DNA of 61,553 nucleotides, the filler included, from Choristocarpus tenellus KU-1152 (taxonomy: Eukaryota; Protista; Phaeophyceae): assembly GCA_964200185.2 (NCBI GenBank). It is 11 parts of 11 records of this genome, joined end to end, with 100 filler letters (N's around TTAATTAATTAA, not from the genome) between each part and the next. Parts side by side here need not be neighbours in the genome. Positions count along the whole stretch, not along the records: positions 47,257 to 50,900 come from CAXNAD020018773.1; 10 more parts are not named here. The stretch is one strand, 5' to 3'. Position numbers and translations under genes: made by a program. Positions 47,157 through 51,052 of this stretch are shown here, in pieces. Every line of letters starts with the position of its first letter. The stretch's first letter is position 1. Under the pieces are notes generated by a model. The model made no database searches. It had not been told where the DNA came from and saw only the letters and a program-made list of their open reading frames with translations.

Positions 47157-48168
47157 NNNNNNNNNNNNNNNNNNNNNNNNNNNNNNNNNNNNNNNNNNNN
47201 TTAATTAATTAANNNNNNNNNNNNNNNNNNNNNNNNNNNNNNNNNNNNNNNNNNNNCTTGCCCGGCGATTCTCTTCGCCACCCTTGTCTGAGTGAACCAC
47301 GCCGCCACAGAATCACACGATTCACATATATGACATTTTATTTCCTTAGGGCTTTCGCTGACATGTGAATAGTTCTCATTGATTTCCCCCTATCACATCT
47401 CCAAAATGTCAGAGGGCATAATAATAAAAGTACTTCTCACCAGAAAGAAGTAGTTACTAATACCAAGTAGATTGATCCAAGAGAAGTTACTCCTCCCTGT
47501 CGACATCCCGCAAAGTAACGCCAATGACCTGGTCATGACATATCAGACTGGCACATTGTTTTACATCATATCGAAATTTGAATAAATGCGTTATTTTGAT
47601 GGAATCTAATATCCTTGTCCACACTTCTATCAATACTTGTCTTTCTTGTTCCCTCTATCACAACATATCATATAACGTAACAACCTTTCCAGAGCTCCAT
47701 ACCTCTCATCACATGAAAAATCTTATGTCCAAGAAGAACAGATGAATGCCATTGCACTCCCCCGAAAACCAACATAACTTTATATCTATACACACCATAT
47801 CCTCCCGACATTTAAAAATAAATGCCGAAGCAACATTTTTCCAGCCCCCTCTGCGTCTCAACCTGTTGCAGCCAGTCAGGGACAAAACATGGCGTCGAAT
47901 TACCTCGACCATAGTCTGCCTCCTCCCCTATGGATGGATAGCATGACAGGGAAAACCACACTCAGAACAAATCGGGTACAGTTTCAGTGAAGTCAGTTCC
48001 CAACTCCCCCCCGTTATTAGTATGTCCAAAAAATAGTATCTCAAGTCGTCCTGTTGTCCTTTTCTTGTGTTCCTTCAGTCCTGACCCAGTTAACCTAACA
48101 TCGGTGCAGTACTGTCACAACCTTGCAAGTCGTATGGAACCTAGCTAGTGCACAGCTGCAATAATAAC

Positions 48169-50532
48169 ATGAAGATCAGTTCTCTAGCCATACTGGGACT
48201 CCTTGGACTCACTGACGCCTACGCTACCTTACACCTCGCTGAAGATGAAAATGCCCATCGCAGAGGATTCCATATGTCGGTGAGGACACCTATCACTTAT
48301 AAGCTCATGTTTGTTAACCTATCAACTTCTCCAGGTCACAGCTGATAGGTCTGTGCAGTGATTGTGTTGTTCCCCTACTAATAGTGGTATACCTTGTTAA
48401 TCATCGAGACACGACTGTCTGCCCTGGCGAAACATTGGTGTATCAATATTCGACAAGCCTTACACCATACGCCCCTTGCTGGCATCTAAATTATCCTAAG
48501 CAACGCCCTTTCCTCTGGAACCCTGCACTTTTCCGCTCCGGTCGGTGCTTCAATTACGGCGGAAACTGCATATCTAACTGCTGCAAATCACAAGGACTAC
48601 GATCGCGCTGACCACGATCGTCTGCTGACAGTGAGCTTGCTCTACCTCATTACTCTTTCCCTACTCCGAAAAGTTCTTATAGCATAGATAACTTTAGAGA
48701 ATAGAGTGTGGGACACGATAAAATAACCCTGATTTTGTCGGCAAATGGGAATAAGATGTGTGGTCAAAATTTCGAACAACGAGATGCGACCTGCTGCTTT
48801 TACGTGCTTGAAGGAGAACCCTTGCTGGTATTGCAGAGAACTTAGTATAGCATAGGTCTGCCCAACAACTGCCGCAAGTAGCCGCTGCAGAAGGAGCAAG
48901 CCAGGCATGGGGCTCAAAGTATCTGGGGGGGGGTTGCAGCAGTCCATTTGGGTTCAATTTTTCATGTCGCGATTTTTGGTTGATTTGGTTGCATGCGTTG
49001 GATGGATAATGTAAATGCACTTTTCCTGATTTTGACCCAAATGGACACCCTGGTGTGGCACCCCCCCCCCCAGATACTTTGGGTCATGAGGGATCTCCAA
49101 TAGTTTGTTGTCAGTAGCATATCGTGACTCAATACGCTCCTTTCGATGTTCCTGTCGGGACTGATCACTACGTGTTATTGATCTACTGCCTAACGTACAG
49201 GACTACGATGACGACAATAACCATAAGAGGAAGGACAAGGACAAAAATAGGGGCCACAAAAGAAAGGAGATAGATGACGAGAAGGACCGCAAGAGGAAGG
49301 ACAAGTACAAGGACGACGACAAGGGACGCAAGCGGAAGGATAAGGACAACTACCATGCCCGTGCCTTGTCGGTGTGAATGCCTTGGTTGTGCCATTACAT
49401 GCATGGACCGAAGCACATCTTTTCCCTCGATTGTGCCCAGTATTAGTTACAGTAGTTTACATAGGGTACTGCTGAGCAAATACAACTTTAATTTAGACCG
49501 ACCCTACATTTCTAGTGCCCTACACCTATTACTATACTTTCCTTTCACATACTCTTTGCACGAAGGCTTATACATGTGAGTCGATGCCATAGTTGGTGCA
49601 TCACAAGAGCAGTGTATGAAATGACTACTTCAGTCATTAGCTCATTGGCAGTATCTACAGTAACTCACCATCTCAATGTTTATGTTGATAGATGTTGACA
49701 TGCTCCTCCACTAAACTTGCCTGTTTCAAAATGATATCCACACAGGACTACAGGGATAGGTCCTACGAGGATAAGGACGATAACAAAAACCACAAGAGAA
49801 AGGACAATAGCGACGACAAGGACTTCAAGAGGAAGGATAGGGACGACGACATGGGCCACAACCAGAACAACAAGGCCAACGACAAGTACCATGGCCGTGC
49901 CCTGTCGGTGAGGATTCTTACTCGCACCATGATTAAATACACCTTTGCACACAAAAGCTTGAGTTCGATTGTTCCCAAGTGCGACTACTTCAGAGTAATT
50001 GTTACTCCTGTACCGCATTGTGTCTACTGTGGTGATCATGCTGCTTCTACTAGTGGTACAATTCACACCATGTCCCTCTTGCGATGCTGTGCAACCTCAA
50101 ACACCGCCCTTTATGTTGGAACGCCCATTGCACTTTCTCCACACTGTTCGGTATTCATTTCCCCCCTGGACAAAACCCTTGAACTGCTGGAATCATTAGG
50201 ACTACGACCAGACGGTGAGCTTGGCTTGGTGTGATTAATTATTCTATTGTACCGGAAGTAGTGACACACAAGACCTATACTCTGGTCCACCAATTGTTAA
50301 GAGTAGTAGACTAATATTGCCTAGTCCATAATATGATGGGGGTTAATAGTCTCTTATTTATTAGGGCATAATACCATTCATTGTCTCTCTTGCGATATCC
50401 AATGCCAAAGCGTGAACCTTCTTTCCGCTGGAACCTTGCACTTGGCTCGTTGCTTCTATTCCTTCTGCAAACTGCCTCAACCACTGCAACCACAAGGGCT
50501 ATTACCGCGCTGACAACCATCGTCTACTGATG
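48169..50532 (+). CDS. Secreted modular precursor: signal peptide plus repeated phase-0 exons (DY...RxLx); 3' partial
   Basis: Exons 48169-48279 MKISSLAILGLLGLTDAYATLHLAEDENAHRRGFHMS; 48595-48630 DYDRADHDRLLT; 49201-49371 DYDDDNNHKRKD...NYHARALS; 49746-49907 DYRDRSYED...KYHGRALS; 50200-50214 DYDQT; 50497-50532 GYYRADNHRLLM. All have AG|...|GTGAG or GTGTG ends and lengths 111/36/171/162/15/36. CTAAC branch sites precede exons 2 and 3. Confidence 0.75.
48911..49085 (-). mobile_element. MITE family B in intron 2 of the secreted-precursor gene
   Basis: GGCTCAAAGTATCTG(G)n...(C)nAGATACTTTGGGTC; flanks ATGG/ATGA. Confidence 0.92.
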
Positions 50533-51052
50533 GTGAGCTTCCTTCAGCACCTTCCTCTTCTTACTATTAGTAACAGAAAACTGTGAACTCTGAAGTACTG
50601 TTGTTGTGTGGTGAGTATAATTCTTCTCTTACTACTATTGATAGCATTAGTCAAACCCATATAATATTATGTATACTTCGTTATGTACACAAAAACAGAT
50701 ACATTCCTGTCCTTTTATTTATCTACTTTTAATTAATATAGAGGGGTACTTTGAGATGTATGATAATGTGTACTTTGATACAGTTTTCAGGAGACGAATG
50801 AATCACCATCTAAAAAATACATTTACAACTGTGTACAGTACCTACCCCGATTTTGTTCATCCATGGGTATGCCCTAAAAAAGCGGCACACAATCTATATG
50901 NNNNNNNNNNNNNNNNNNNNNNNNNNNNNNNNNNNNNNNNNNNNTTAATTAATTAANNNNNNNNNNNNNNNNNNNNNNNNNNNNNNNNNNNNNNNNNNNN
51001 GGGGGGGGGGGAGGGAGGGCAGGGGGCGGGAGGGCGGGGGGGGGGGTGTTGT

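Follow-up and report, generated by a model that had tools for sequence, protein, structure and literature searches.

A gene on contig CAXNAD020018773.1 (3,644 nucleotides, nt) of assembly GCA_964200185.2 from the brown alga Choristocarpus tenellus has been analysed, and its product is tentatively read, at a probability of about 0.35, as a secreted modular precursor processed at RxL motifs, lineage-restricted, disordered and highly charged. The contig makes up positions 47257-50900 of the window, which is the whole 61,553-nt stretch of joined DNA, and all coordinates are counted along it. The locus holds a genuine gene that is expressed; in the public databases searched it occurs in C. tenellus alone, and its exons 1-4 are confirmed. 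An earlier note on this DNA had described it as a candidate prohormone with one peptide per exon, secreted and cut exactly at the splice sites.

According to the favoured reading, a single symmetric phase-0 exon, starting with Asp-Tyr (DY) and ending with His-x-Arg-x-Leu-[Ser/Thr/Met], would have been duplicated in tandem as the gene grew, and the interiors of the two long copies, exons 3 and 4, would have expanded into xKRK[D/E] sub-repeats of 11-13 residues. A signal peptide in exon 1 would lead the protein into the secretory pathway, where an endoprotease would cut at the RxL that terminates each module, as in diatom cell-wall precursors. The K/D-rich, Tyr-capped fragments may then be delivered to the wall or the extracellular matrix.

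Exon structure and splicing

The six exons proposed in the earlier note (E1-E6) are present at the given places. Every exon has a length that is a multiple of three (phase 0), and all introns have GT..AG borders, with lengths of 316, 570, 374, 292 and 282 nt for introns 1 to 5. The exons, and the intron whose removal was directly visible, are the following (aa, amino acids).

48169-48279, plus strand: exon 1 (E1), 37 aa (MKISSLAILGLLGLTDAYATLHLAEDENAHRRGFHMS, MKISS...HMS), first exon of the public model CAM9936913.1, with high summed depth in the RNA-type run X3.
48595-48630, plus strand: exon 2 (E2), 12 aa (DYDRADHDRLLT), short module, the only exon that departs, in these coordinates, from the earlier description, included in CAM9936913.1; no X3 contig was placed on it.
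49201-49371, plus strand: exon 3 (E3), 57 aa (DYDDD...YHARALS), long K/D/R-rich module with four xKRK[D/E] sub-repeats, its 3' end joined to E4 in X3.
49372-49745, plus strand: intron 3, 374 nt, GT..AG, removal directly visible in X3.
49746-49907, plus strand: exon 4 (E4), 54 aa (DYRDR...YHGRALS), second long module with two xKRK[D/E] sub-repeats; X3 record 21 covers 49745-49908.
50200-50214, plus strand: candidate exon 5 (E5), 15 nt, DYDQT, with borders AG| and |GTGAGC.
50497-50532, plus strand: candidate exon 6 (E6), 12 aa (GYYRADNHRLLM), module of the E2 type, 75% identical to E2.

A protein of 268 aa, CAM9936913.1 (P0001; "unnamed protein product [Choristocarpus tenellus]"), is encoded on this contig. 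It consists of E1, E2, E3 and E4 at borders identical to those of the earlier note, followed by a read-through of intron 4 to a stop codon at 50232-50234. By exact look-up, it forms a singleton cluster that occurs on one contig only, and a 180-aa genomic open reading frame gave no record. The Gmove annotation pipeline relies on transcript alignments together with protein homology to build its models (10.1101/2024.02.19.579948). The three annotated introns were probably drawn from transcripts, because Gmove is driven by evidence and the protein lacks a homologue.

Three read runs were compared with the contig. Runs X1 (depth about 18-22) and X2 (depth about 5-8) are DNA-like, their contigs running colinear with the genome, and run X3 is RNA-like. 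Record 21 of X3 (255 nt, depth 355, zero mismatches) covers 49280-49370 and 49745-49908. Its joint from 49370 to 49745 skips 374 nt and, with the cut moved by one base, has GT..AG borders and equals intron 3 exactly; the depth of this joint was 0 in both X1 and X2. In addition, X3 depth was absent across most of introns 1 and 2, with the exception of a repeat. The splicing put forward for all six exons thus holds for E1-E4, as in the public model, and the E3-E4 junction was found also in RNA. For E1-E2 and E2-E3 the evidence is that of CAM9936913.1, and no spliced contig was found for E4-E5 or E5-E6. A gene on the minus strand was rejected, since the splice joint reads GT..AG on the plus strand.

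The 3' part of the gene and the tail of the public model

The end of the public model differs from the spliced structure in the following segment.

49908-50234, plus strand: read-through tail of CAM9936913.1, 108 aa, stop codon at 50232-50234; candidate retained intron 4.

Record 23 of X3 is an unspliced contig (49879-50867, depth 11.7) that starts 30 nt before the end of record 21 at 49908, and contigs that part at a fork in a 31-mer graph should overlap by just this length, k-1. The fall in depth from 355 to 11.7 at 49908/49909 suggests that about 97% of the RNA containing E4 leaves at the E4 donor, and the read-through tail would be a minor form by the same comparison. The sequence reached after leaving the E4 donor also begins with G, with which both E5 (GAC...) and E6 (GGC...) are compatible. 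No spliced contig over E5 or E6 was seen in X3, where this region is covered by the unspliced record 23; as spliced exons, E5 and E6 are plausible. Past the E6 donor, the unspliced reading adds 17 residues (VSFLQHLPLLTISNRKL) before a stop.

The tail itself shows an abrupt change of composition to L/T/S/V/C, and between 50085 and 50199 it shares homology with the 3' end of intron 1, an intron that CAM9936913.1 itself splices out. Considering the composition, this homology and the X3 fork, a genuine coding function of the tail was judged unlikely. The 108 C-terminal residues of CAM9936913.1 are most likely a translated retained intron 4, and the C-terminus of the model is untrustworthy.

Both ends of the contig (47257-47500 and 50795-50900) are high-copy repeats, with summed X1 depths up to 272,000 and 19,800, respectively, and the loose ends at both repeats continue into AT-rich sequence. 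These repeats probably explain why the assembly breaks here and why the 3' end of the gene is absent; the terminal exon and the 3' untranslated region (UTR) probably lie beyond the contig end.

Origin of the modules and possible constraint on their ends

The modules follow the pattern DY...H-x-R-x-L-[S/T/M]. Both the short type (E2, E5 and E6) and the long type (E3 and E4) open with GACTACGA... and close in H-x-R-x-L-x, and the junctions read RLLT|DY, RALS|DY and RALS|DY, as claimed before. A single unit, comprising the exon and about 100 nt of upstream intron, was copied to give E2, E5 and E6; E5 belongs to the E2 type but lacks 21 nt internally through a deletion, and in E6 the Asp of DY has been lost. 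E3 and E4 share 56% amino-acid and 62% nucleotide identity, and their flanking introns, about 40% identical, are effectively unalignable. From these likenesses, all five downstream exons plausibly descend from one symmetric exon. The repeated DY/RxLx pattern that had been pointed out is indeed beyond chance, but it is made of copies of one module and not of five independent events. That motif and exon border fall together is explained by the duplication of a symmetric exon, and neither five independent placements nor a functional explanation is required for it.

The conservation within the long modules is uneven. E3 and E4 agree fully over their first 6 nt and at 24 of their last 27 nt, compared with 81 of 123 in the interior. 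The codons of H-x-R-x-L-x differ between the module types (CAC/CAT, CTG/TTG/CTA, ACA/TCG) with the encoded motif retained, although the duplicates are old. The better-kept ends of E3 and E4, together with the synonymous differences (CAC/CAT and CTG/TTG/CTA), suggest a constraint on the module ends. The NG86 estimate of the ratio of nonsynonymous to synonymous changes (dN/dS) between E3 and E4 was about 0.43, a value that depends on the method and comes from just 52 codons of low-complexity sequence.

Features of the predicted protein

The first 19 residues of E1 (MKISSLAILGLLGLTDAYA) are signal-peptide-like in a heuristic check, in agreement with the earlier note. They comprise the n-region MK, a 12-residue hydrophobic core (residues 3-14, mean Kyte-Doolittle hydropathy 2.28) and TDAYA, with Ala at positions -3 and -1. 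The rest of E1 is a short acidic stretch that closes in AHRRGFHMS. Plastid targeting was rejected, as the predicted cut AYA|T has no Phe at +1, the residue typical of heterokont bipartite presequences.

The mature part encoded by E1-E4 (141 aa) contains 24% D, 17% K, 13% R, 8.5% N, 7% H and 3.5% S, with an isoelectric point (pI) of 8.8, and is probably intrinsically disordered. AlphaFold2, run on the single sequence, gave one long helix at residues 39-111 with a predicted local distance difference test score (pLDDT) of 63-84 and disorder elsewhere, and the Atlas model of the whole CAM9936913.1 had a pLDDT of 0.37. The RxL sites of CAM9936913.1 (RLL 46-48, RAL 103-105 and RAL 157-159) are each located at a module end, and a fourth, RLL, is found in the candidate E6. 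Two sites extend to RxLxD, RLLTD at residue 46, which is 27 residues past the predicted signal-peptide cut, and RALSD at residue 103. DY opens E2-E5 in acidic contexts such as DYDDD, DYDRAD and DYDQT. The earlier description of modules that start with DY and end with RxLx at the exon borders is supported; the end of E1 (RRGFHMS|DY) does not fit RxLx.

The same composition and models are also what would be expected of a secreted disordered polyampholyte, possibly with a single charged helix, which is not processed and acts whole in the wall or matrix, its motifs being inherited through duplication. Binding to alginate, sulfated fucans or Ca2+ would be conceivable for such a protein, as would cross-linking through Tyr. 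This alternative is held to be almost as probable as the favoured reading. Apart from the high D, K and R content, the predicted helix and the disorder, it agrees with the fact that every module is a duplicate and with the lack of excess conservation of the E2 and E6 exons over the adjacent intron. The 24/27 identity of the E3/E4 ends in a context of diverged interiors and unalignable introns speaks against it, as it suggests a specific role for the ends, and so does the persistence of H-x-R-x-L-x across both module types in spite of different codons. If the protein is such an uncleaved charged matrix protein, the finding is an ordinary one.

A different processing would be possible at the six xKRK[D/E] motifs (residues 57, 68, 79, 92, 122 and 133), which recur with a period of 11-13 residues and belong to the DNA families D1 and D2. 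A kexin-like convertase cutting after their Lys-Arg would break each long module into peptides about 9-13 residues long, and cuts at RxL would then be optional. Fungal Kex2-processed repeat proteins and animal neuropeptide precursors are cut repeatedly at dibasic sites in this way. Besides the regular spacing, the retention of the RKRKD core in paralogous read fragments would favour this scheme, which is nevertheless considered improbable: with 17% K and 13% R, KR is expected from the composition alone, and the peptides lying between KR sites are not conserved with one another.

Searches for relatives and paralogous copies

A HMMER profile of E3 and E4 run against 1.84 billion cluster representatives retrieved CAM9936913.1 only. 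The same single protein was obtained in word-based protein searches with the E4 residues of the genomic open reading frame and with residues 1-160 or 38-160 of CAM9936913.1. No Pfam family was matched, no Rfam match was found within the piece 47257-50900, and in the ESM Atlas no hit rose above chance (best feature score 0.77), the structural rows being long charged helices.

Inside the alga, the reads point to further copies. X1 depth over E1 was 105, compared with about 18-22 in the flanks, and X2 depth over E3 was 46, compared with about 8. An X1 contig with a depth of 129.5, about 7 times that of single-copy sequence, joins 47840 to 48166, three bases before the ATG, so that either commoner paralogous copies lack the 325 nt at 47841-48165 or this copy bears an insertion in its promoter or 5' UTR. 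In X3, summed depth reached 28,632 over E1 and 263,714 over E3. Contigs of X3 share 48167-48211, that is, the first 14 codons of the signal peptide, with at least 90% identity and diverge on both sides, with ...CACACCTGACGAC upstream and GTGCTGCCCACACCGC downstream, the latter giving ...GLSAAHTA. These contigs are from a much more highly expressed paralogue or from another secreted-protein gene with the same leader. Paralogous read fragments also retain the RKRKD core. The reads thus indicate a small paralogue family in the same genome, for which size and expression are indicative values, as the E3 depth is perhaps partly due to unrelated (AAG GAC)n-like transcripts.

These copies bear on the question of whether the gene has a function at all. 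It could be a young gene, fast-evolving or degenerating, with little or no function, that is, a divergent copy in a small family whose expression comes from the other copies, its own motifs being leftovers of recent duplication. The absence of a homologue in the databases searched would agree with this, as would the 21-nt deletion of E5, the loss of the Asp of DY in E6 and the apparent greater abundance of other copies, both in X3 (28,632 over E1 compared with 355 for the contig joining its own E3 and E4) and in X1 (105 compared with about 18-22), including those paralogues that lack the 325 nt upstream of the ATG, as joined in the contig of depth 129.5. It is an unlikely explanation when the following points are taken into account: the spliced contig of the gene itself has a depth of 355, compared with 11.7 for the unspliced form, all exons are open and in phase, the ends of E3 and E4 are conserved, and their dN/dS is below 1.

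Comparison with known precursors

The closest analogue of the RxL-processed precursor proposed here is the group of RXL-terminated precursors of diatoms (the silaffin Sil1p, silacidins, cingulins and frustulins, and the 'RXL domain' of Silicanin-1). In Sil1p and other biosilica proteins, a signal peptide is combined with a short stretch that has RXL at its end and with repeats that are each closed by RXL (RRIL/RRNL), and these motifs are removed in maturation (PMC4557024, PMC5525289). The protease that cuts them was still unidentified as of 2017 (PMC5525289). The C. tenellus protein shares with them a signal peptide for the endoplasmic reticulum (here signal-peptide-like, by the heuristic check), a short acidic stretch and charged Lys-rich tandem units ending in R-x-L, together with an ochrophyte host, the absence of a conserved fold and few or no sequence homologues. 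It differs in that the alga does not silicify, the units are exons, an additional S/T/M follows RxL, and the composition is rich in Asp/Lys/Arg with 3.5% Ser, unlike the diatom proteins, which are Ser/Lys-rich or Ser/Asp/Glu-rich with phosphate and polyamine modifications and to which it has no similarity in database sequence searches. Release of the units by an RXL endoprotease is established in diatoms, and here it is proposed from the layout of the sequence.

Site-1 protease (S1P/SKI-1, plant SBT6.1) recognizes RXXL and RXLX sites, as in GLV1 and RALF23 (PMC4983112). RLLT, RALS and RLLM are of the RXLX form, their Arg taking P4 and their Leu P2, and RXLX precedes the potential scissile bond at RLLT|D, RALS|D, RALS| and RLLM|. 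The S1P substrates are not homologous to this protein, and the E1 end FHMS|D does not fit. The register of the cut decides which ends would be produced. Because of the extra residue after RxL, a cut of the S1P type would expose DY, but a cut of the diatom or PEXEL type would leave an N-terminal [S/T]-D-Y. Consequently, a single peptide from each exon, with its ends at the splice sites, would be obtained only in the S1P register (RxLx and then the cut), the one register in which the cut falls on the exon junction; in the diatom/PEXEL register (RxL and then the cut), that of the phylogenetically closer precedents, it falls one residue before. RLLTD and RALSD also match the PEXEL form RxLx[E/Q/D] literally, the first of them soon after the predicted signal-peptide cut, and in a host of the SAR clade, a likeness of motif only. 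PEXEL/TEXEL sites of this form are single N-terminal export signals of alveolate parasite effectors, cut after Leu by the ER/Golgi aspartic proteases plasmepsin V and ASP5. In contrast, the motif recurs here at module ends, and in a free-living alga.

The prohormone of the earlier note would require that an S1P/SBT6.1-type subtilase cuts at the exon junctions and that the peptides released, with DY at their N-terminus, are tyrosine-sulfated and used in signalling. The fit of RLLT|DY and RALS|DY to the RXLX site type (PMC4983112) would be in line with this, and DY in an acidic context, a determinant for plant tyrosylprotein sulfotransferase (TPST) (PMC13074997), is present in DYDDD, DYDRAD and DYDQT. 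In this respect the units would resemble the plant PSK/PSY/RGF/GLV/CIF peptides, with Asp-Tyr opening the released unit (PMC13074997). Many of the genes gained early in brown algae also encode secreted or membrane proteins (Phaeoexplorer, 10.1101/2024.02.19.579948). On the other hand, the canonical plant sulfated-peptide families have been detected only from seed plants on, and chlorophyte TPST-like proteins lack canonical sulfotransferase domains (PMC13074997); therefore, the plant precedent is not transferable by homology. Neither homologues nor a conserved short core peptide was found here (Pfam, 1.84 billion cluster representatives). Such cutting would yield peptides of anywhere between 5 and 57 residues, and the E1 end misfits the site. 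The long exons, low in complexity and rich in K/D/R, with KR dibasic sites at six internal positions, do not resemble known peptide hormones. For tyrosine sulfation in brown algae no literature was found, the nearest match dealing with polysaccharide sulfotransferases. Taken together, a sulfated prohormone is very improbable.

The orphan proteins encoded by schistosome micro-exon genes (MEGs) are likewise described as secreted; the first exon carries the signal peptide, and short symmetric exons in multiples of three follow it (10.1101/2023.06.21.545858). The signal-peptide-like first exon and the symmetric E2, E5 and E6 (36, 15 and 36 nt) are similar to this architecture, and the symmetry implies that exon skipping would keep the frame. 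The difference is that most of the coding sequence is in E3 (171 nt) and E4 (162 nt), above the MEG range of 3-81 nt, and in an unrelated lineage, so that the gene does not belong to an architecture with most coding sequence in symmetric exons of 3-81 nt.

Several observations weigh against processing at the module-terminal RxL. The contig stops in the repeat at 50795-50900, leaving the gene without its 3' end, and E5 and E6 are candidates only. The E1 end RRGFHMS|DY does not conform to RxLx, and with 3.5% serine the mature part is not silaffin-like in composition. The dN/dS of E3 and E4 depends on the method and on those few low-complexity codons. The E2 and E6 exons (75%) are hardly better kept than the intron just upstream, and the short modules may be recent, nearly neutral duplicates. 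Finally, no homologue was found in the databases searched.

With RxL at the module ends of a predicted secreted protein in a brown alga, it would become possible to ask directly whether RxL processing dates back to the ochrophyte ancestor or is a speciality of diatom biosilica. No description of a peptide-processing or peptide-signalling system in brown algae was found in the literature searched. A broader proposal, to which little probability is given, would be a secretory RxL endoprotease system common to brown algae and diatoms across the ochrophytes, with this gene family as the first brown-algal substrate and with exons duplicated or skipped to vary Tyr-capped, possibly sulfated peptides for the wall or for signals. 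In addition, the gene illustrates cleanly how a lineage-restricted gene can be built up when a symmetric exon is duplicated.

Other features of the introns

An island of TCGATTGT[G/T]CCCA is found at 49430-49445 and at 49968-49983, about 60 nt into introns 3 and 4, which are otherwise unalignable. It may be a remnant of the duplication or an intronic signal. Intron 2 contains the following element, similar to a miniature inverted-repeat transposable element (MITE).

48915-49081 (core 48958-49056), no strand assigned: MITE-like high-copy element with perfect 19-nt terminal inverted repeats (CAAAGTATCTGGGGGGGGG) ending in G9/C9 runs.

The summed depth of this element was up to about 790,000 in X1, compared with about 18-22 for the single-copy flanks. 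The RNA-type run X3 is rich in it as well, and its other copies have variant flanks.

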